64,000 bases of DNA, taken from NCBI RefSeq assembly GCF_006345805.1, contig NC_042997.1, positions 167,710,001 to 167,774,000 of the forward strand. Direction: 5' to 3'. A program made the translations under genes and the position numbers. Each line of letters starts with the position of its first letter. Positions within the stretch are counted from its first letter, which is position 1. Below the pieces are notes generated by a model that worked only from the letters and a program-made list of their open reading frames with translations, had not been told where the DNA came from and made no database searches. The stretch comes from Octopus sinensis (taxonomy: Eukaryota). This document shows, one piece after another, positions 4,501 to 55,616 of the stretch.

Positions 4501-7500
4501 CGAATTTGATTTCGATTTCAATTTCACTTGCCTCAACAGGTCTTCGCAAGCAGAGTTTAGTGTCCAATGAGTTTAATTAGAACAAAATCAGTTGTGCAGC
4601 ATTTATTTATCTATCTATCTATTTATGGTTGTTGACAATCTGAATATCAGATTTTTTATGTGTTATGATTTCAGTTTAAGTGATATTATTTCTTGCTTTT
4701 ATTCTATTTGAGAATATCTGAGTTGGGGGTTTGACTTCATTAATTTCTGTTTATATATGATAAAAGGTTAATGATCACAAATGTTATAGAGGTATGTTAT
4801 CTGAAGGTCACTTTTTGCAACTTGATATAGAGCTGCTTAGTTTAATAACTGTAGTAGAGATATTAATTTTGATAAGTTTCAATAGAGTAGAAATGAAATT
4901 ACGTAAGCGTTGATAAAATTACTTATTTGGAAAATGGTAGTGATTGGCTGTTTTAAAAAAAAATATTAGTTGGTGTGTGTAGGTGAGTACTCTTAATTGT
5001 TATCTTTATGTAACAACTGTGAGGTCATTTACACTAAGGTGAAAGAGTAACACAGAAACTGAAGAGGAGTCTTGTTAATGACCCATGTGAATGAATCAGT
5101 AAATTAGTTTGCATCAGATAGTGAAGCTGATCCAGTAAGTGTGAGGTTGTGTAAGCTGAAAGTTGCAACAAGAACAGAGTCCAGTTAATTATGCTGTCAG
5201 TCAAATAGTAGCAGAATAGAATAGTCTGTGAAAAAAAAAATGTACTTTACTACTCAAACTGATATAAAGAATTGTCATAATGATTTTGAAAACTTTATTT
5301 ACTTTGTTCAAAAGTTGTTATATCAAGTAATTCTGTGCGAGGCAACAGCATGACAGCTGTTATGGGTTCCATGGGAAATTTATTAATCCCTCCCAGGTGT
5401 TAACTGTTTCTCTTGTCAATTTTTATGAAGTAAAGTATTTAATCTACCACAGTTAATAGGCCTTCTGTTTCCATCTTGATGTGTTGATTTTATTACTTTC
5501 AATATTTGCCTTCCAATGTCTTTTGTGTATTTCATAAACCAAGTATACTTATATACTTAGGTATGAGAAACTTACATACTCCGCATACTTACCGAAATTT
5601 TTTTTCACTGAAATTGTTCAACAAATGTTCATATCAATTATGAATTGCTTGGCGATTCATATAAGGCGGCGAGCTGGCAGAAATGTTAGCACGCCGGGCG
5701 AGATGCTTAGTGGTATTTCGTCTGCCGTTACATTCTGAGTTCAAATTCCACTGAGGTCGACTTTGCCTTTCATCCTTTCAGGGTTGATAAATTAGGTACC
5801 AGTTACGCACTGGGGTCAATGTAATCGACTTAATCCCTTTGTCTGTCCTTGTTTGTCCCCTCTATGTTTGGCCCCTTGTGGGCAATAAAGTATGAATTGC
5901 TTGGGCTATGATATATGTCTACACAGTAAAAGAATAAATAGATAACTTTAACTTATAGTATAATTTCCAGTATAATGGATTTGTGAGATTTTACGTTGTA
6001 ACAAATCCCTCTCCCATTGCACACATACCCCCCCCCCTCTTTACACATATCTTTATAAAGTGCTTAAGAAGTACAAAATATTACTTAAATTCTGTCAGCC
6101 TATAGTTAAACTCTTGGGAAATTCTAAACACACATGGACATCCGTTTTTGAAGATATGAGCATCTACATATGTGTGGTACTTTCTATAATGTTTCCACTT
6201 TGTTACTGGGTTGAAGTAACTTTAGCACCATATATATTTATAGTTAGAAAGTAAGTTCATATAAAACTGTTTTAACCATATCACATCCTTGTAATATATA
6301 CTCTTACTCTAGATTCTCAAAATTATTTGATACTCCTGATGGTAGATTTATTTCATGCCCCTGGTAGAAGCTCTGTTTCATAACCTTAACCCTTTCATTA
6401 CTGTATTTATTTTGAGATGCTCTGTGTTTCTTTCAATTACTTTAAATATAACAAAGAATTTAGTAAAATAACTTAGTTATCATTCAGCTAGTATTAGGAA
6501 CATAAATTGTGACTAAGGTTTGGTGGAAGATTTTAATTCAAAACTTAAGAAAACAAGACATTTGTACTCAGAGCCAGAGCTGGTTTCAGCCGGGTTGGTA
6601 ACGAAAGGGTTAAACATAGCTAAATTTTCCTGGTATAGAATACCTGTAAAAATATGAGAGCGTCACAGGAGTTAGATGAGATGGTTATTTATAACATATA
6701 CTATAATGTGATTTATACCATATACTATAAGGTGAGATATAATATATACCATAACAATTTCATCTCAATTTATGATATTGTTTCCAGGTTTAAAAACAAA
6801 AACAGAAAAGCAATTTTATAGTTAGTATATATTTTAGATTGTATTTTCTAATTTAAAATACTGTTAATGTGCCTCTAAGTATTCCTTTGCTTTTTTTCAG
6901 ATCTTTAATCGTTTCTTCTGTGAGAACTAATATTTTTATCTCTTGCCTAACTATTTCTTCTTAGTTCATCTTATGTTTGATGTACCTTTTGTCCAGTATC
7001 TTCCATTATCATTTTTGATTACAGCTTCACCTGCATACATCACCTATTAACCTTGTATTCACCTGACATTCCAGCTTTAAAATGGTATCATAAATGATAC
7101 TATTTTATATTATACCTTGTTCATTTTGAAGATAAATGCCATTGCTGTAAAAGAATCTCTTTTGATGAAGCACATCTTAAAAATCTGTCTAAATCTCTGT
7201 TTCGTTTCAGTCTAACTTAGGAAACATGGAAACGAAGAAGGAGCAACTGAAGATGATTGGAGGTAACATAGCCTTAACTCAGGTAAATTACAAAGATTTT
7301 TTTGTTTGTTTTCTTTTATCCTTTTATTTGTTTAAGTCATTTGACTGCAGCCATGCTGGAGCACCACCTTTAGTTGAACAAATCAACCCCAGGATTTATT
7401 CTTTGTAAGCTTAGTACTTATTCTATTGGTCTCTTTTGCTGAACCATTAAGTTACAGGGACATAAACACACCAACATAAACAGGGACATAAACACACACA

Positions 7501-39839: not shown

Positions 39840-40445
39840 TTCTTATTTCTTTATTGCCCACAAGGGGCTAAACATAGAGGGGACAAACAAGGAGAGACAC
39901 AGGGATTAAGTCGATTACATCGACCCCAGTGCGTAACTGGTACTTAATTTATCGAGCCCGAAAGGATGAAAGGCAAAGTCGACCTCGGCGGAATTTGAAC
40001 TCAGAACATAGCGGCCGACGAAATACCTATTTCTTTACTACCCACAAGGGGCTAAATACAGAGAGGACAAACAAGGACAGACAAACGGATTAAGTCGATT
40101 ATATCGATCCCAGTGCGTAACTGGTACTTATTTAATCGACCCCGAAAGGATGAAAGGTAAAGTCGACCTCGGTGGAATTTGAACTCGGAACGTAACGGCA
40201 GACGAAATACCTATTTCTTTACTACCCATAAGAGGCTAAACACAGAGAGGACAAACAAGAACAGACAGACGGATTAAATCGATTATATCGACCCCAGTGC
40301 GTAACTGGTACTTATTTAATCGACCCCGAAAGGATGAAAGGTAAAGTCGACCTCGGTGGAATTTGAACTCAGAACGTAACGGCAGACGAAATACGGCCTC
40401 GCATTTCGCCCGGCGCGCTAACGTTTCTGTCAGCTCGCTGCCTTA
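39840..40445 (-). mobile_element. Tandem SINE family A trimer (one head, three ~180-bp bodies)
   Basis: Units joined at GAAATACC|TATTTCTTTAC; tRNA head only at 40390-40445. Confidence 0.9.
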
Positions 40446-40482
40446 ATTGTTTAACTGTTTCTGTCACACTGAATGTAACAAC

Positions 40483-40757
40483 TGTGGTTGATGAAAGGAG
40501 CACAACGGAAACAAGGAAATAGGAAACAGAAGTGCAATAAGGTCTTACCTGACAGGGGATGAAGTCGGATGGCCTTCAGCCAACTTGCTCGCGTGTTGTC
40601 GTCTCGGTGCCTTGCTGGGGTCTGCCGCAGCCGGTCGATGCCGCACGTGCGTTGAGTCACTCGCTTCCGCTTCCGCCGGCGCATGCGCCCTGCAAGACCT
40701 GTAAGCATCACTTCCGCTCCCGCCCGTCCCGTCACACTCCTTCATCACCACACCACA
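40483..40757 (-). repeat. 3' LTR
   Basis: No difference from 44447-44721 on base-by-base reading. Confidence 0.95.
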
Positions 40758-40766
40758 CGCCCCCCT
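40758..40766 (-). other. Polypurine tract AGGGGGG(CG)
   Basis: Immediately upstream of the 3' LTR on the element strand. Confidence 0.8.
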
Positions 40767-40793
40767 GATCTATAAATCACTGAGCCGGCTTCC

Positions 40794-43700
40794 TCACTCG
40801 CTCCCGCACCCGAAACTGGTTTCATAATCAGCCAGCCAGGGAGGAGGGTGCCGCTCCCTCTGTGGTCGCAGCGCGACCCTAGGACTTGTTTCTGGTGTGT
40901 TGCTGTCGACCTCGTCATCCTGTCGGTTGTTTTCGTCCTGCCCACTGTTGCTTGTCCCATCCTCTGGGGCATGGACAATCCTCCGTATGTCCAAAACGTG
41001 GCGTGGCATACCATCGATGGAGATGTTATTCTTCGAATTTACGGAGGTTATTGTCCCCTTTCCCCATTGCGATGTACACCGTGCGTTTGGGGGTTTTACC
41101 CAGACTTCCTCCCCGACCCGCACGAAGGCGTGCTCTTCCTCTGCCCCGGGTTGCATTGATTTAGTACACGGATGCCTCCACTCGTACCTGAATATTGCTC
41201 TGTGTGGCACCGATTCCTCAGCCTGTCCGGATCGGGGAGACAAGTTGTACCAAAAAACTGCTTCAAGCGGCGAAATGTGCCCTCTTTCCGCTATGGCCTT
41301 GACTGTCCGATGGTGCCTCTCCACGATCCCGTTACCGCCCGGCCTATACGCTGCTCTGAACAAGCGTCGCACGTTCCACCGATCAAGCATAACCCTCAAT
41401 GCTTCCGAACGAAATGCCGCCCCGTTGTCCATCAGTAGTTCTTCCACGGGACCTCTCTCTAAAAATATCCCGTTCAGGATCTGCACGATCTCGTCAGCAT
41501 TGCCCGATCTCAACTCCCTCCAAATGGCCAGCCGGCCCGGCCCACAGTCGACCATGGAGAGGTACGTTCGCTGACGGTAGTGTGTCACATCCACAGCTAG
41601 CCTTTTCCAGTTCTGCTCCACGGAAAGGCTTCCCTGTTCATGCCCACACGGAGCAGGGTCGATGGACTGACACCTGTCGCAGCTCCCGACCACCTTCCGG
41701 ACGCTTCTCCTGGTCACGTCAGCATCAATCTTTTTTGCCAGATACAGGGTCCTGTCCACAACCAGGTGATGCATAGCGTGCAATTTCTTCAGCTCGGAGT
41801 CATCCAACCGACACGCCGCAGCTATCCCTCTCCGCGCCTCCTCCGGTTCTTCCAACCACGCCCTTTTCACCCTGGTCAGTACGTCCGCCTTGTTTTTCTC
41901 CGAAGGCACGAAGACCACGTTCAGCTTCAGTCCGAATTCGGCGATCAGTTCACCTAGAACTCCTAGACGGCGCTTCACTAACATCTCCGCAGCACCTTTC
42001 GTCCGCACTCTCCTGTCACCGGTGATCACTGATCCTACCCAGCCAAGCACAGTGGCCGAATCCGTCCGCATTTCAATCGTGCGCAGCCCCCATTTCAAGG
42101 CCAAGTTCACCCCTTTCAGCAGCGCGTCTAGTTCGGCGACATTGATGTGGTTGAAATCATCTGCTTTCCGAAGCCAGGCCGCGTCCTCCACCGCAGTGCC
42201 TTCGATTGCCAACACCACCCCTATCGCTATACTGCTAGCATCACACCAGACAGTCCCGCATTTCGTCCTGGGCACGTACCAGTTCCCCCTGGCCGGGTCT
42301 TCCGCTCTTGTCCTCTCTAGGATCTCCTGCATCATCGCCACCGTCCCTTCTCCCACCTTGTCGCCCCACCTCTCTCCTTCTGCTCGTCTCTTGGTGTAAC
42401 TACACGCCGTGCGCAGCCATCCAGCGATCGGGTAGTGACCGACCAACTTCCCACACACCGAGAACAGCTCTCTCCTGCTGACGCTGGAACTCAGCTCTGG
42501 GATTTCATTTCCTCTCCGGAACACCAATTCACCTGATCTATCTCTTCGCAGCTTCAGCCCCAGCGCGGCTCCCCCTTCAATCGACTCCGGCGGCTTAGCA
42601 ATCAGTCCGAACTTCTCCAGATGTCTCACTACCTCGTCGGCTGCCACTACAGTTTCGTCCACCAAAATGTCGTCAATGTAGGAGCTGGTGGCCTTTCTAA
42701 TCTTGCCGTCTTTCCCTAGGACGGACCTAAGCACTGCCGACATGATCTTCGGAGCAGAATTCAGCCCGAAACCCAGCCTGGTTAGACAGTACGTCCGGCC
42801 CTTGTACCGCACCAGCTGATATCGCCATAGTTTGTCGCTCACATGGAGCTGCAAGTATGCCGATCTCAAGTCGACAATCGTCGCTGCCTCAGTCGACTGT
42901 CTCCACTTGCGTAATGCCTCACCACAAACGTCTGTCGCCTCACCTCCCGTGTGACACGATATGTGCTGGTTTAACTCCCTGAAGTCCAGCACCGGTCTGA
43001 CTTTTCCCTTCGTAGGCTGCACCACCGCCATCAGGGGTAGCACTCCGCCCGCTACCTCCTCCTTCCAAGGGACAAGGATCCCTTCCTCGATCCACCTCTC
43101 GACCTCGTCTTCAAACTCAACCCTGGCGTGGCCTTTCAGAGTATGCTGGTAACAGCTCACCCTGTTCTCCAGTGTCGGGGGCTCGTCCTTCCATTTCCAC
43201 TCTATCGTCCACCGCTGACCATCGAAGTCCTTGTCCTCGATGGTGTAAGCGGCGCCGTCCCTCGCGGGGCTCTGTTCCCTCTGGTGATCCTGACTCGCAG
43301 TGCACGACGCCCCCACGCTTCCGAACGTGACCTTATTTCCCACAACGCTGACGCCACCGAGGCAGTTGATGGCGTCCATCCCCATAACCACATCAACTCC
43401 ATTTATCACGCGTTCGGCCACAATTGCCTGTAGCCTTAGCGTCGCGCCGCGCACCACTATCTCTACCGTGCTGCTGCCTCTGCAACGGATTTCGCTGCCG
43501 TCGACCGCCCGGACACTACACACCCCGTTCCATTCCTTCGTCACCAGGGTGGTCGTACAGCCCGTATCCACAAGGGCCTTGAACGTCTCCCCCTCGGCCT
43601 CCACGTCAATCACTGGCAGTGTCTCCAATAGCGCCTCTACTCGTTTGAGGGGAAAGTTCGAGAGGCAGCAACTTCCCCGCGGTCGTTTCCCTGGCCGCAA
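40794..43700 (-). CDS. pol: Pol polyprotein (protease, RT, RNase H, integrase), reached by -1 frameshift
   Basis: LVDTGC protease; RPVLDFRELN, DLRSAY, GFGLNSAP and YIDDILV in RT; CDAS..HINVAELDA..TDS..NKADVLTR in RNase H; HH..C..C, AVDVTH, DNG, NGIVER in integrase; no internal stop. Confidence 0.95.
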   Translation of the reverse strand: MRPGKRPRGSCCLSNFPLKRVEALLETLPVIDVEAEGETFKALVDTGCTTTLVTKEWNGVCSVRAVDGSEIRCRGSSTVEIVVRGATLRLQAIVAERVINGVDVVMGMDAINCLGGVSVVGNKVTFGSVGASCTASQDHQREQSPARDGAAYTIEDKDFDGQRWTIEWKWKDEPPTLENRVSCYQHTLKGHARVEFEDEVERWIEEGILVPWKEEVAGGVLPLMAVVQPTKGKVRPVLDFRELNQHISCHTGGEATDVCGEALRKWRQSTEAATIVDLRSAYLQLHVSDKLWRYQLVRYKGRTYCLTRLGFGLNSAPKIMSAVLRSVLGKDGKIRKATSSYIDDILVDETVVAADEVVRHLEKFGLIAKPPESIEGGAALGLKLRRDRSGELVFRRGNEIPELSSSVSRRELFSVCGKLVGHYPIAGWLRTACSYTKRRAEGERWGDKVGEGTVAMMQEILERTRAEDPARGNWYVPRTKCGTVWCDASSIAIGVVLAIEGTAVEDAAWLRKADDFNHINVAELDALLKGVNLALKWGLRTIEMRTDSATVLGWVGSVITGDRRVRTKGAAEMLVKRRLGVLGELIAEFGLKLNVVFVPSEKNKADVLTRVKRAWLEEPEEARRGIAAACRLDDSELKKLHAMHHLVVDRTLYLAKKIDADVTRRSVRKVVGSCDRCQSIDPAPCGHEQGSLSVEQNWKRLAVDVTHYRQRTYLSMVDCGPGRLAIWRELRSGNADEIVQILNGIFLERGPVEELLMDNGAAFRSEALRVMLDRWNVRRLFRAAYRPGGNGIVERHHRTVKAIAERGHISPLEAVFWYNLSPRSGQAEESVPHRAIFRYEWRHPCTKSMQPGAEEEHAFVRVGEEVWVKPPNARCTSQWGKGTITSVNSKNNISIDGMPRHVLDIRRIVHAPEDGTSNSGQDENNRQDDEVDSNTPETSPRVALRPQRERHPPPWLADYETSFGCGSE
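43633..43691 (-). promoter_or_regulatory. -1 programmed ribosomal frameshift signal (slippery site + H-type pseudoknot)
   Basis: G GGA AAC in gag phase (43685-43691), 6-nt spacer, stem 1 GGGGAAGTT/AACTTTCCCC, stem 2 GCCTCT/AGAGGC. Confidence 0.8.
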
Positions 43701-44401
43701 TCACGGGCAATGTGCCCTGTCTGCCTGCATCGATAGCAAACTGGGCCCAGCTGCGTACAGTCCCGCGCCATGTGCGGTCCCTGGCATTTAAAACATCGTC
43801 CTGAGAACGGCCGCTCTCGTTGCACGGTGGGCTTCCGTACCTCTTTCTCGGGACGTCGTCCGTCTTTACGCGCCTCCGTCACCGCCATCGCTATCCCCTT
43901 CCGCCCTGAGTGTCTCGTCAACCCGCGAGCATGAGTTACAAGCTCTCTCAATGGCATCTTTTTGACCCCGGGCAGTTGTTGTAGGTGAATCCCTACATCG
44001 TCGGGGAACCCATTTACGAATGCCAGTCGGGCTGCTCTCTCCAGTCCTTCTCCGGCAAACCCGGCCAGAGTCGCTAGCCTTCTAGCTTCCGCCGCAAAAT
44101 CATCCACCTGGCCTCCCGCCCACCTGATTGCACCCAGCTTAGCGAAAGCTGTGTACTCGCATTCCGTGTATGCGTCACACAAGCGCCGCTCTATATTCCC
44201 ATCGCAGAGCCGTTCTTTTTCGTCCATTTCTAGGTAAAGCGACAACGCACTTCCTTCCAAATACAGGGCCATAAGACTCGCCACGTCGCTTATGCCCTGC
44301 AGTCTCGCCACCAGCCTGATTTTCTGAATCCAGGCCACTACATCGCCTTCGCCGTTAAAAGGTCTGACGACGTCACTGGCGATCCTAATTTTTGCCGACA
44401 T
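43637..44401 (-). CDS. gag: Gag (254 aa, two zinc knuckles)
   Basis: CFKCQGPHMARDC and CYRCRQTGHIARDC; overlaps pol in the -1 frame. Confidence 0.93.
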   Translation of the reverse strand: MSAKIRIASDVVRPFNGEGDVVAWIQKIRLVARLQGISDVASLMALYLEGSALSLYLEMDEKERLCDGNIERRLCDAYTECEYTAFAKLGAIRWAGGQVDDFAAEARRLATLAGFAGEGLERAARLAFVNGFPDDVGIHLQQLPGVKKMPLRELVTHARGLTRHSGRKGIAMAVTEARKDGRRPEKEVRKPTVQRERPFSGRCFKCQGPHMARDCTQLGPVCYRCRQTGHIARDCGQGNDRGEVAASRTFPSNE

Positions 44402-44434
44402 CGTGTTGAAAAAAAATGTGAACGCTGACTAAAT

Positions 44435-44446
44435 GCCGAAATAGCT
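44435..44446 (-). other. Non-canonical primer-binding site complementary to tRNA-Phe nt 1-12
   Basis: Element strand AGCTATTTCGGC directly after the LTR CA; its complement GCCGAAATAGCT is the 5' end of vertebrate/insect tRNA-Phe(GAA) as recalled. Confidence 0.65.
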
Positions 44447-44721
44447 TGTGGTTGATGAAAGGAGCACAACGGAAACAAGGAAATAGGAAACAGAAGTGCA
44501 ATAAGGTCTTACCTGACAGGGGATGAAGTCGGATGGCCTTCAGCCAACTTGCTCGCGTGTTGTCGTCTCGGTGCCTTGCTGGGGTCTGCCGCAGCCGGTC
44601 GATGCCGCACGTGCGTTGAGTCACTCGCTTCCGCTTCCGCCGGCGCATGCGCCCTGCAAGACCTGTAAGCATCACTTCCGCTCCCGCCCGTCCCGTCACA
44701 CTCCTTCATCACCACACCACA
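44447..44721 (-). repeat. 5' LTR
   Basis: TG..CA, followed on the element strand by the PBS and a ~33-nt leader to the gag ATG. Confidence 0.95.
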
Positions 44722-45499
44722 ACAACGTCGAACAGGGAGTGAGGATTACTAAAACAAAAGGTGTCTGTTTCCTTTAAGCCATCATAAAAGACAGAAATTT
44801 GAAGATCTCTGGAAATGTAACTTCAACAGTTTCTCAGGAGCCCGTTTATTTAAACGAAAGTTTAAATAAAGAAATGGCAACAGTAATAGTGATTTATCTT
44901 ATTAGCTACTAGATTCAAAAGATTCAATAAAATACAAAGAACATTAAAGACAATGGGGTTTACAATATGTATGGACATGAACTAAGTCATTTTAAAAGCT
45001 AAACGTTGGGAGGGGTGAAGCCATAATATAATAGACGGATTAAAAATTTAATGGAACATGAAGTAAGTATAAAATAAACTGTTTCTGAGATAGGTTCAGG
45101 GATTGAAATTTGGCTGAAGGATTATCCGGTAAAAGAATGAAACTGAAAGTGACCTCGGCAGGGTTTGAACTCAGATCATAAAATGTTGGATGAAACGACC
45201 ACAAGGCATTCTCCCATCATACTAACGGTTCTGCAAATTCACTACCCTTAAATAAAAAATACATAATATATAAATACACAATAATTAAAATGATTTAAAG
45301 CTGAAAACCATGTAAAACATATAGGGCTAGCCGCCCGCACACGGGTGGGAACTTATGGATTAGGCTGGACTGGAGCTCCCCACAATTCTACCCTAGTCCT
45401 TGTACAGAGTTCTGTTGCATCCCAAAATACCGGGTTATGAATATCCTATTGAATTCGGCTGCTTTTTGTTTCATGCTTTCCTAATTCCACAGTAAGCAC

Positions 45500-47029: not shown

Positions 47030-47722
47030 GTTTCAAGTTTTGGCATAGAGCCAACAGTCTTAGTCGATTACCTTGACCCCAGTGCTTAACTGGTACTTAT
47101 TTTACTGACTTGAAACGGATTCAAAGCAAAATCGATCTCGGCAGAAATCGAACTCAGAATACAAAGAGTAGGAAAAAATGTCGCTAAGTATTTTGTCCCA
47201 TGTGTTAACGATTCTACCAGCTCGCAACAGAGGTGTTGCTAGGTTCTAAAGTTAGTAGGGAGCGAACATATAAAAAAAGGCGCCGTGACACATACCAAAC
47301 AATTTTTAATTCATTTCTCTTATATTGTACGAAATGTTTCATTAGTTATAATATATACAATTGTATTCTACGTTCATTAATTTCATGTTTCAGTAACAAT
47401 GTCATTGCGTATGGAACTTAAAACTACTGAAATAGGTGTGCTTTGAAAAAGATGAAACTCCACGGAGTCTTCCAGGTTATGACGTCAGGGTTTGTTTTGT
47501 TTCTTCAGATATCAGAAGCCTCCGACACAACTAAGGAGATTCAGCAGACAATTAAAAAACATGAAAGGTCAGTCAAATAGAGTAATAATTCAATAACTAC
47601 TTCGACCCCAGTGTTTCGCTGATATTTGATTTATCAACCTCGAAAGGATGAAAAGTAAAGTCGACCGCGGTGGAATTTGAACTCAGAACGTAAAGACGAA
47701 CGAAATGCTAACCCGTCGACTG

Positions 47723-48865: not shown

Positions 48866-49627
48866 TTGTTGGTGGTGCTGGTGGTAGTGGTCATAATGAT
48901 GATGATAGTGATGGTATTGGTAATGAGTATTTCGTTTTCTTTCCGTAGTTCATTTATGAAGCCCATCAAGTCCACATTAGATGTTTTGAGTACTCTGAGC
49001 TCAATGTCTTACAAGTGAGTTGTGGGATTCTCAGTCATGGTTTCTTCTGGGAGAAAGTTGGATTTTCTTTTACCCTTTCCCGCTTGCTTTCTCTTGAGAT
49101 TGAGTTTTCTTCTTGGAGAAGTTTTCTTGCTCTACTCTCTGAACTCTGTATCTGTTTCTTTTCCATGTCCACCCTGTTGTTACAAAATATTAAGGTGGCA
49201 CTAATGGTTATGATTGATGTGGATCCCTTAGTCGTCATACTTTTGGTCCTGAGCCATGAGGTGAGTTTTTAAAAACCATTTTCGGCACCTTTTGCTTGCT
49301 GTTGTTGCTGACTCTACTCTTGTTCGTTGCTCTCCTTCCTCCATATCTCTCCCTCCCCTTCAAACCCTCCTCTTTTTCTTTTTTCCCTCTCTCTCTTTCT
49401 TGTTCCCCATTTCAGAAAACCCGTTAAGTGGGATTTACCTCTGCAAGTGTAACAGCTGATCATTCTGCCATACATCGCCATACTCATTTTTAAAATTGTT
49501 TCTGCACTAACGACCGGATATAACCCGAAATAACTCTATAGTTTTCGAAAATCACTAGAACTTGATAATTTCATACTTCCGGTCACATAATCATTTTTCG
49601 TAACCTCTGCATTTATAACCTACCATA

Positions 49628-50019
49628 GGCGTAGGAGTGGCTGTGTGGTAAGTAGCTTGCTTACTGACCACATGGTTTCGGCTTCAGTCCCACTGCGTGG
49701 CACCTTGGGCCAGTGTCTTCTACTATAGCCTCGGGCCGACCAAAGCTTTGTGAGTGGATTTGGTAGACGGAAACTGAAAGAAGCCCGTCGTATATATGTG
49801 TATATATGCTTGTGTGTCTGTGTTTGTCCCCCCAACCTCGCTTGACAACCGATGCTGGTGTGTTTACGTCCTCGTAACTTAGCGTCTCGGCAAAATAGAC
49901 CAATAGAATAAGTACTAGGCTTAGAAAGAATAAGTCCTGGGGTCGATTTGCTTGACTAAAGGTGGTGCTCCAGCATGACCACAGTCAAATGACTGAAACA
50001 AGTAAAAGAGTAAAAGAGT
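49628..50019 (+). mobile_element. SINE family B, full length
   Basis: GGCGTAGGAGTGGCTGTGTGG head, internal TA/TG tract, (AAAAGAGT)n tail. Confidence 0.9.
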
Positions 50020-50039
50020 ACCTATATTATGCTAAAAAC

Positions 50040-54918: not shown

Positions 54919-55196
54919 ATGTAGGGGAGAAATAGGGAGATTGAATGGGAGGGTAAAAGAAAGTTAAGAGGTCATGTCAGAGATAAGGAGAGAATTAAAA
55001 ACTGAAAGGGTAACAAATCTACAACCACACACACACAAACAGATACATAGGCACTCACACACTCATGCAGACAAGCATAGACATACATATACACATATCA
55101 CACAAAAACATATACAAGTATATAAGCACACTGAAATACATATACAGACCCACAGAAATACAGTTACGTACACATACACATACAGACACACATAGT

Positions 55197-55616
55197 GGCG
55201 CAGGAGTGGCTGTGTGGTAAGTAGCCTGTCTACCAACCACATGGTCCGGGTTCAGTCCCACTGCGTGGCACCTTGGGCAAGTGTCTTCTACTATAGCCTC
55301 GGGCCGACCAAAGCCTTGTGAGTGGATTTGGTAGACGGAAACTGAAAGAAGCCTGTCGTATATATGTATATATATATATGTATATGTGTGTATATGTTTG
55401 TGTGTCTGTGTTTGTCCCCCCTAGCATTGCTTGACAACTGATGCTGGCGTGTTTACGTCCCCGCTACTTAGCTGTTCGGCAAAAGAGACCGAAAGAATAA
55501 GTACTGGGCTTAGAAAGAATAAGTCCTGGGGTCGATTTGCTCGACTAAAGGCGGTGCTCCAGCATGGCCGCAGTCAAATGACTGAAACAAGTAAAAGAGT
55601 AAAAGAGTAAAGAGAG
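55197..55616 (+). mobile_element. SINE family B, full length
   Basis: Closely similar to 49628-50019. Confidence 0.9.

Follow-up and report, generated by a model that had tools for sequence, protein, structure and literature searches.

We describe a widespread family of LTR retrotransposons, found in molluscs, crustaceans, nematodes and uncultured eukaryotes, in which 12 nt complementary to the 5' end of a tRNA lie directly after the 5' LTR, at the position of the primer-binding site (PBS). Three primer sources are known for LTR elements: the 3' end of a tRNA, the cleaved 5' half of tRNAiMet and the self-priming of Tf1. Judging from the sequence comparisons presented here, the primer of this family probably consists of the first 12 nt of a host tRNA, cut to leave a 3'-OH, and the RNase H of the element would be the probable cutter. 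With a confidence that falls a little short of even, we further propose that priming with an RNase H-excised tRNA 5' 12-mer is common to the whole family. It would then be a third mode of using a tRNA as primer and the trans counterpart, possibly the precursor, of Tf1 self-priming.

The element that led to this family lies on the minus strand of the window (the whole 64-kb stretch of DNA that was analysed), at 40483-44721. Sequence analysis showed that it is structurally intact over its 4,239 bp, and that it is bounded by a direct repeat of 275 nt that is 100% identical between its two copies in the window (Table 1). The pol ORF is in the -1 frame relative to gag and overlaps it by 64 nt, and the heptamer G GGA AAC inside the overlap is likely the -1 frameshift site for Gag-Pol. 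The RNase H active site is intact (D487, E523, D547 and D606 of pol), as are the HHCC motif and the residues D704, D758 and E794 of the integrase. In an alignment of 27 relatives, the catalytic residues of the protease, RT (YIDD), RNase H (DEDD) and integrase (HHCC and DDE) are invariant. Polypurine tracts in the relatives are similar to that of the window element (..atcagggggg..). No third ORF or env was found in the window element, in which the pol stop codon lies 37 nt before the 3' LTR.

Table 1. Features of the LTR retrotransposon in the window. Positions are those of the window and sequences are given on the element strand.
Feature	Position	Strand	Remarks
Target-site duplication, upstream copy, GTTGT	44722..44726	-	Identical to 40478-40482
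5' LTR, 275 bp, TGTGG...CCACA	44447..44721	-	100% identical to the 3' copy
Putative PBS AGCTATTTCGGC, complement of tRNA-Phe(GAA) nt 1-12	44435..44446	-	Adjoins the LTR terminal CA; position and length recur family-wide
Short leader from PBS to gag ATG, without TGG; unconserved in relatives	44402..44434	-	
gag, 254 aa, two CCHC zinc knuckles	43637..44401	-	gag relatives in 45+ loci (tblastn)
Candidate -1 frameshift slippery heptamer, G GGA AAC	43685..43691	-	In gag frame, inside the gag/pol overlap
pol ORF, 968 aa: protease, RT (YIDD), DUF7047/connection, RNase H, integrase	40794..43700	-	
Polypurine tract region, AGATCAGGGGGGCG	40758..40771	-	Directly 5' of the 3' LTR
3' LTR, 275 bp	40483..40757	-	Direct repeat
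Target-site duplication, downstream copy, GTTGT	40478..40482	-	

The G+C content of the element is ~56% (window 40001-44000), compared to 34-39% in the surrounding genome. Given this contrast, the complete identity of the LTRs and the preservation of the ORFs and catalytic residues, the insertion appears to be very young and intact. The G+C difference and the identical LTRs also suggest that the element arrived very recently, perhaps through horizontal transfer. Other repeats are present in the vicinity. Three tandem copies of a 184-bp unit (~90% identical) occupy window positions 39844-40394, 90 bp from the 3' LTR of the element, and related copies are located near 47069 and 47598. This unit, together with the flank at 40380-40480, resembles what we take to be an abundant octopus SINE-like repeat. 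A dispersed repeat of ~400 bp, found at 49624-50020 and 55191-55609 (~90% identical), ends in both copies in (AGTAAAAG)n-like units and has the appearance of a SINE, not of two LTRs.

On the element strand, AGCTATTTCGGC (44446..44435, followed by A at 44434) starts directly after the terminal CA of the 5' LTR (44447). There is no TGG anywhere in the 45-nt leader that precedes the gag ATG of the window element. The reverse complement of the 12-mer, GCCGAAATAGCT, has a single occurrence in the 64-kb window when one mismatch is allowed and is hence absent from the LTR. It is identical to the first 12 nt of the published human tRNA-Phe(GAA) (PMC11706605). No tRNA gene was found in the 64-kb window, and the 12/12 match is thus to the human tRNA-Phe, from which that of the host may differ. 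We take the same tRNA-Phe 5' end to be present in insects and other metazoans. A random 12-mer at a fixed position would match any of ~50 tRNA 5' ends with a probability of ~3e-6 (50 x 4^-12), and a chance match was rejected because the junction recurs across the whole family, as detailed below. The first-pass annotation of this DNA had reported a PBS directly after the terminal CA of the 5' LTR, devoid of TGG, without a complement in the LTR and with a 12/12 match to nt 1-12 of tRNA-Phe(GAA), and had deemed chance an unlikely explanation. All of this was borne out.

A search of a protein collection retrieved 589 relatives of pol (E<=1e-10), most of them encoded on ~4-kb contigs from metagenome and read-archive assemblies, and no relatives were found in IMG/VR. 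The gag of the window element itself had no entry in the protein collection. The named genomes retrieved in this first search were those of Argonauta, Petrolisthes and Oratosquilla, and a second search, using a distant family member as the query, added Macrobrachium, Amphibalanus and Trichuris. We examined 76 metagenomic loci and 10 loci from named genomes. In ~55 of these related loci, comprising nearly every locus that includes the 5' flank of gag, AGCTAT-NNN-GGC comes directly after the LTR end ...ACA. The gag gene starts 0-60 nt after the 12-mer in the relatives, and only rarely at ~200 nt. Across 41 non-redundant junctions, the information content is high over ACA and the adjoining AGCTAT-NNN-GGC, and falls to background level from position 13. 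Because part of the 12-mer served to find the junctions, its own conservation is in part a circular result. This does not apply to the ACA that flanks it, to its placement with respect to gag or to the abrupt loss of conservation after it. No TGG-type or other conserved site was detected between the LTR and gag in the ~55 loci, and in the many relatives whose gag ATG follows within 0-4 nt there is no space for another PBS. Ordinary TGG sites or unconserved sequence at this position in relatives, which the first-pass annotation had regarded as contrary to its reading, were also looked for: none of the ~55 loci has a TGG, and the 12-nt block behind the 5' LTR keeps its position and length in them.

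Nine complete copies flanked by clean 5-bp duplications (the window element, L001, L002, L003, L080, L081, L082, L084 and L086) allow the LTR end to be set from the 3' LTR, and in all of them it abuts the 12-mer. Given that the U5 boundary is where minus-strand synthesis starts, the 12-mer would be the PBS, with the 3' end of the primer pairing with its first base. The LTRs cannot be aligned between relatives, while the PBS is both conserved and host-specific.

Several copies show peculiarities of their own. The identical LTRs of L001 (Argonauta hians) end in ...GATCAAG (1969-1975 and 6025-6031), not in ...ACA, and the duplication is clean; the tRNA complementarity of this copy could reach nt 13, with the LTR boundary still after nt 12. 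The 5-bp duplication TCAGT is common to L001 (1620-1624/6032-6036) and L081 (280-284/5113-5117), also from Argonauta hians. These copies belong to different element lineages on different scaffolds, and the shared TCAGT may reflect a target preference or a coincidence (~1 in 1,000). In L085 (Macrobrachium rosenbergii, 5950-5970), the 3' LTR lacks the terminal CA and there is no matching duplication, indicating a truncated or rearranged 3' end. Many of the ~4-kb metagenomic contigs (L005, L007, L011, L015, L017, L020, L021, L023, L028 and others) are circular permutations of the order pol-LTR-PBS-gag or contain two PBS copies, which are 4.0-4.1 kb apart in L015 and L021. Such contigs could represent tandem arrays with a shared LTR, one-LTR circles or the assembly collapse of multi-copy elements. 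Two relatives (P0165 and P0169) were deposited as proteins of Gammaproteobacteria MAGs, under the name 'aspartyl protease family protein', an assignment almost certainly due to eukaryotic contamination of the bins.

The constant parts of the PBS correspond to G1-C3 and U8-A9-G10-C11-U12 of a tRNA, and its variable middle corresponds to nt 4-7. This pattern mirrors the variation among tRNA 5' ends. L036 carries AGCTAGCCGGGC, exactly complementary to human tRNA-Lys(CTT) nt 1-12, and L049 and L050 carry AGCTATCCGGGC, exactly complementary to tRNA-Lys(TTT) nt 1-12. CGCTACCGAGGC, present in L051, matches elongator tRNA-Met with one mismatch, and its first PBS base has changed from A to C, fitting G12. 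GCCTAGATAGCTCAGT begins bacterial tRNA-Phe(GAA) genes (6/10 checked) as well as tRNA-Met genes, and the GCCGTG and GCCGCG types begin tRNA-Thr or, less often, tRNA-Phe genes in the viral and prokaryotic sets; the look-ups for these three types covered bacterial, prokaryotic and viral genes. At the sequence level, all the variants that were looked up correspond to genuine tRNA 5' ends, and the tRNA species in the real host is settled only for the matches to universally conserved animal tRNAs. The possibility that all the variants represent the tRNA-Phe of different hosts was weakened by the GCCGTG and GCCGCG types, mostly tRNA-Thr, and by the two types that are animal tRNA-Lys. The first-pass annotation had proposed tRNA-Phe as the partner, which fits the window, octopod and barnacle elements; other lineages match tRNA-Lys(CTT) or tRNA-Lys(TTT), and one is Met-like. 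The outcome of the comparison that it had suggested was favourable, as the variable middle switches to other tRNA 5' ends and follows the host taxon.

The loci themselves contain few tRNA genes: in the 86 eukaryotic and metagenomic loci, only one was detected, a tRNA-Val(CAC) gene near an Oratosquilla oratoria copy (L080 595-667, minus strand, equivalent to L087 8095-8167), ~196 bp upstream of the 5' LTR and so far a single case. We take the tRNA-Phe of C. elegans to begin with GCCUCGAUAGCU, in which case the PBS of Trichuris would be a perfect Phe match. For the malacostracan type, GCCUAGAUAGCU, we know of no matching animal tRNA. That Malacostraca have a tRNA matching the CTAG type is a prediction. 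We also searched 15 Phe-type loci for a second conserved contact with tRNA-Phe in U5, the leader or U3, comparable to those of HIV and Ty3, and found none at a consistent position. A possible 16-bp helix, allowing G-U pairs, between the gag start and nt 59-74 of tRNA-Phe was observed in L042 (802-817) and is absent from the other Phe-type loci.

The RT-RNase H tree and the corresponding identity matrix show two clades, with 44-51% RT-RH identity between them. In clade A, the Phe type AGCTATTTCGGC is carried by the window element and by two different Argonauta elements, while AGCTATCTAGGC is found in Petrolisthes (L002), Oratosquilla (L080 and L082) and the metagenomic locus L003. The window element clusters with the Argonauta elements at 68-69% RT-RH identity, which, taken with the octopus-like repeats near it, points to an octopod host. 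In clade B, the barnacle Amphibalanus has the Phe type, Trichuris has AGCTATCGAGGC, and a second Petrolisthes lineage (L086) and Macrobrachium (L085) have AGCTATCTAGGC. Among the named hosts, AGCTATCTAGGC is restricted to Malacostraca, where it occurs in both clades (twice in Petrolisthes, in Macrobrachium and in Oratosquilla, summed up as four species). The PBS type thus appears to follow the host and not the phylogeny of the elements. The acquisition of the same PBS by malacostracan elements of both clades argues for a host-encoded primer, as neither an element-encoded partner nor a fixed cis signal would predict host tracking. Among the metagenomic loci, the Phe type was found in at least four separate places of the tree, interleaved with other types, which suggests that PBS switching is frequent.

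We also assessed the affiliation of the family. A Pfam scan of 27 members detected DUF7047 in 27/27, located between the RT and an RNase_H/RVT_3-type RNase H. The Ty3/gypsy RNase H models (RT_RNaseH and RT_RNaseH_2) matched 0/27 members, and the BEL/Pao domains Peptidase_A17, DUF1758/DUF1759 and DUF5641 were found in 0/27 at E<=0.1. Assignments to Ty3/gypsy, BEL/Pao or copia were therefore discarded, as the scan of these 27 members revealed no hallmark domains of any of them. The TGT...ACA LTR termini and the 5-bp duplications are present and are also typical of BEL/Pao. Sequence searches against the PDB retrieved retroviral integrases and RTs only, none of them from Ty3. An AlphaFold (AF2) model, with a pLDDT of 73.7, aligned best with HIV-1 PR-RT/p66 and with the foamy virus PR-RT-RNase H, over 660-820 columns. 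As modelled, the RT-connection(tether)-RNase H arrangement is of the retroviral type, and the family is treated here, on the basis of these models, as an unassigned, env-less, retrovirus-like lineage of LTR retrotransposons. Its general architecture is shared by the Odin elements and lokiretroviruses, which have gag-pol but no env and combine a retrovirus-like RT with a tether and a newly acquired RNase H (PMC9040795). Odin retrotransposons were found only in sea anemones (Actiniaria) after a screen of 1,710 protostome genomes, and the paper that describes them (Wang and Han 2022) mentions no PBS (PMC9040795). As Odin was reported from sea anemones only, the family is probably distinct from it.

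The mechanism that we favour would start with the pairing of the PBS with strand 1-7 of the acceptor stem, U8, A9 and nt 10-12 of the D stem of a host tRNA. The partner would be tRNA-Phe(GAA) for the window, octopod and barnacle elements, and tRNA-Lys or others in the remaining lineages. The acceptor and D stems would be opened on annealing, presumably with the zinc knuckles of Gag as a chaperone. The RNase H of the element would then cut the RNA:RNA duplex after nt 12 of the tRNA, in a Tf1-like reaction acting in trans that would leave a 3'-OH and a 5'-phosphate, and RT would extend the 12-nt RNA into U5. Plus-strand strong-stop synthesis would later copy the primer up to its 5' end, regenerating the PBS. 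This copying would explain why the conserved block is exactly 12 nt long and ends at the tRNA end. The observed part of this scheme is the anatomy, from which we infer the enzymatic steps, that is, the cut and the extension, as well as the intact tRNA as the source of the primer and the element RNase H as the cutter. The DNA is equally compatible with a 10-nt primer followed by 2-nt processing by integrase and with a 12-nt primer followed by blunt-end integration; the A to C switch in L051, a single lineage, favours 12 nt. Some considerations count against the mechanism. It would be energetically costly for a mature, modified tRNA to open its acceptor and D stems, and cleavage of an RNA:RNA duplex by RNase H is, to our knowledge, known for Tf1 only. 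The ...CAAG end of the L001 LTRs, in place of ...CA, is another point against it, and so is the negative search for a second conserved contact between tRNA and element.

Alternative primers, listed under the label ALTERNATIVES, were weighed against this mechanism. The same pairing could be made by a short 5' tRNA fragment (tRF) produced by the host and captured by the particle, with no cut by the element. The comparative evidence would be the same as for the mechanism above, and 5' tRFs are generally known to be abundant in animals. However, the described tRF-5 molecules fall into classes of 14-16, 22-24 and 28-30 nt. On a 12-nt site their 3' nucleotides would remain unpaired, and RT cannot trim these. 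Many of the nucleases that generate tRNA halves leave 2',3'-cyclic phosphates, which are not extendable. The uniform 12 nt, from nematodes to octopods, is also more easily accounted for by a measuring cut encoded by the element, and we consider the capture of pre-made fragments unlikely. We assign a still lower probability to the 5' end of a different pol III transcript with a tRNA-like head, such as the RNA of a tRNA-derived SINE. The 12-mer does span the start of the box A region common in these SINEs, octopod and crustacean genomes are SINE-rich, as the flanks in the window illustrate, and the malacostracan GCCUAGAUAGCU, for which such a SINE RNA is a conceivable primer, is without an animal tRNA match known to us. 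Nevertheless, three of the variants are exact 5' termini of canonical, universally conserved tRNAs, the Phe type is common to octopods and a barnacle, hosts without shared SINE families, and GCCTAGATAGCTCA was not found in any locus examined.

The remaining two explanations dispense with a tRNA as the primer. If the 12-mer served packaging, dimerisation or translation control, priming would take place elsewhere and the likeness to tRNAs would be incidental. The role of the 12-mer in priming is deduced from sequence, and its proximity to the gag start codon (0-60 nt) would suit such functions. This reading is very improbable, since the U5 boundary, by definition the start of the minus strand, abuts the 12-mer in the nine complete copies, there is no other conserved or TGG-type site from the LTR to gag, and neither switching among exact tRNA 5' ends nor tracking of the host in two clades would be seen with a packaging signal. 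Self-priming of the Tf1/sushi kind, in which the first 11-12 nt of the transcript of the element fold back onto the PBS, is suggested by a short PBS that adjoins U5, lacks TGG and approximates the length of that of Tf1. It would require a complement that is missing from the LTR and from the whole element in the window, and the LTRs of the relatives are unalignable. The reverse complement of the 12-mer, with up to two mismatches, was found in the 700 nt upstream of 0/45 sites, and anywhere on the sense strand in 1/42 loci, compared to 13% for shuffled 12-mers. With no self-complement in the window or in the relatives, self-priming is excluded at the sequence level, and we regard it as the least credible of the explanations considered.

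The proposed excision of a tRNA 5' end shares traits with each of the known priming systems. It is closest to that of the Tf1/sushi group, studied in S. pombe Tf1 by the Levin laboratory. Both have a short PBS (11 nt in Tf1, 12 nt here) that adjoins U5 and lacks TGG, and an RNA's extreme 5' end serves as the primer in Tf1 and would do so here. In Tf1, its release with a 3'-OH is attributed to an RNase H cut at the end of an RNA:RNA duplex. They differ in that Tf1 uses its own transcript in cis, so that R begins with the complement of its PBS, whereas the primer here would be the 5' end of a host tRNA and changes with the host. Moreover, Tf1 is a Ty3/gypsy chromovirus, whereas the present family has a retroviral-type RT-connection-RNase H. 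In copia, 1731 and Ty5, the primer is also a 5' tRNA fragment generated by internal cleavage and not the CCA end. That fragment, however, measures ~39 nt and has its end in the anticodon stem-loop, in contrast to the 12 nt ending in the D stem proposed here. It always comes from tRNAiMet and is bound to the PBS by its 3' part, whereas here the pairing would cover the whole fragment down to nt 1 and involve tRNA-Phe, tRNA-Lys or others. No complementarity was found between the 12-mer and the printed human tRNAiMet. Canonical priming from the tRNA 3' end, as in retroviruses, Ty1 and Ty3, likewise relies on a host tRNA and on a PBS at the U5 boundary, which the PBS of Ty1 also abuts. The PBS is regenerated from the primer, as it would be here, and this would account for the perfect PBS matches in young copies. 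The canonical PBS, however, has TGG at its start and is complementary to the last 8-18 nt at the tRNA 3' end, CCA included, a type of site absent from the ~55 members of the present family. Because the paired segment is the 3' CCA end, canonical priming needs no cleavage.

In the open-access full texts searched, no paper described a PBS that is the complement of the 5' end of a tRNA, and the junction sequences reported here were not printed in the texts searched, although older or subscription work could hold such a description. An oversight would be explicable, since standard PBS finders compare tRNA 3' ends only. LTRdigest-style searches, which rely on those ends, would call such elements PBS-less, creating a blind spot in annotation. 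The proposed pairing predicts tRNA 5' ends in the hosts, namely GCCUAGAUAGCU in Malacostraca, GCCUCGAUAGCU in Trichuris and GCCGAAAUAGCU for the tRNA-Phe of octopods and of the barnacle. If the proposal is true, silencing by 3' tRFs directed at the PBS would miss these elements, and 5' tRFs could act on them instead. It would also mean that the 5' end of a tRNA can be invaded and cut to measure, and the cleavage of RNA:RNA duplexes by a retroviral-type RNase H would become testable outside Tf1. Priming from an excised tRNA 5' end would then be a fourth answer to how LTR elements are primed, used by a large and widely distributed family, and a plausible bridge between tRNA priming and self-priming.
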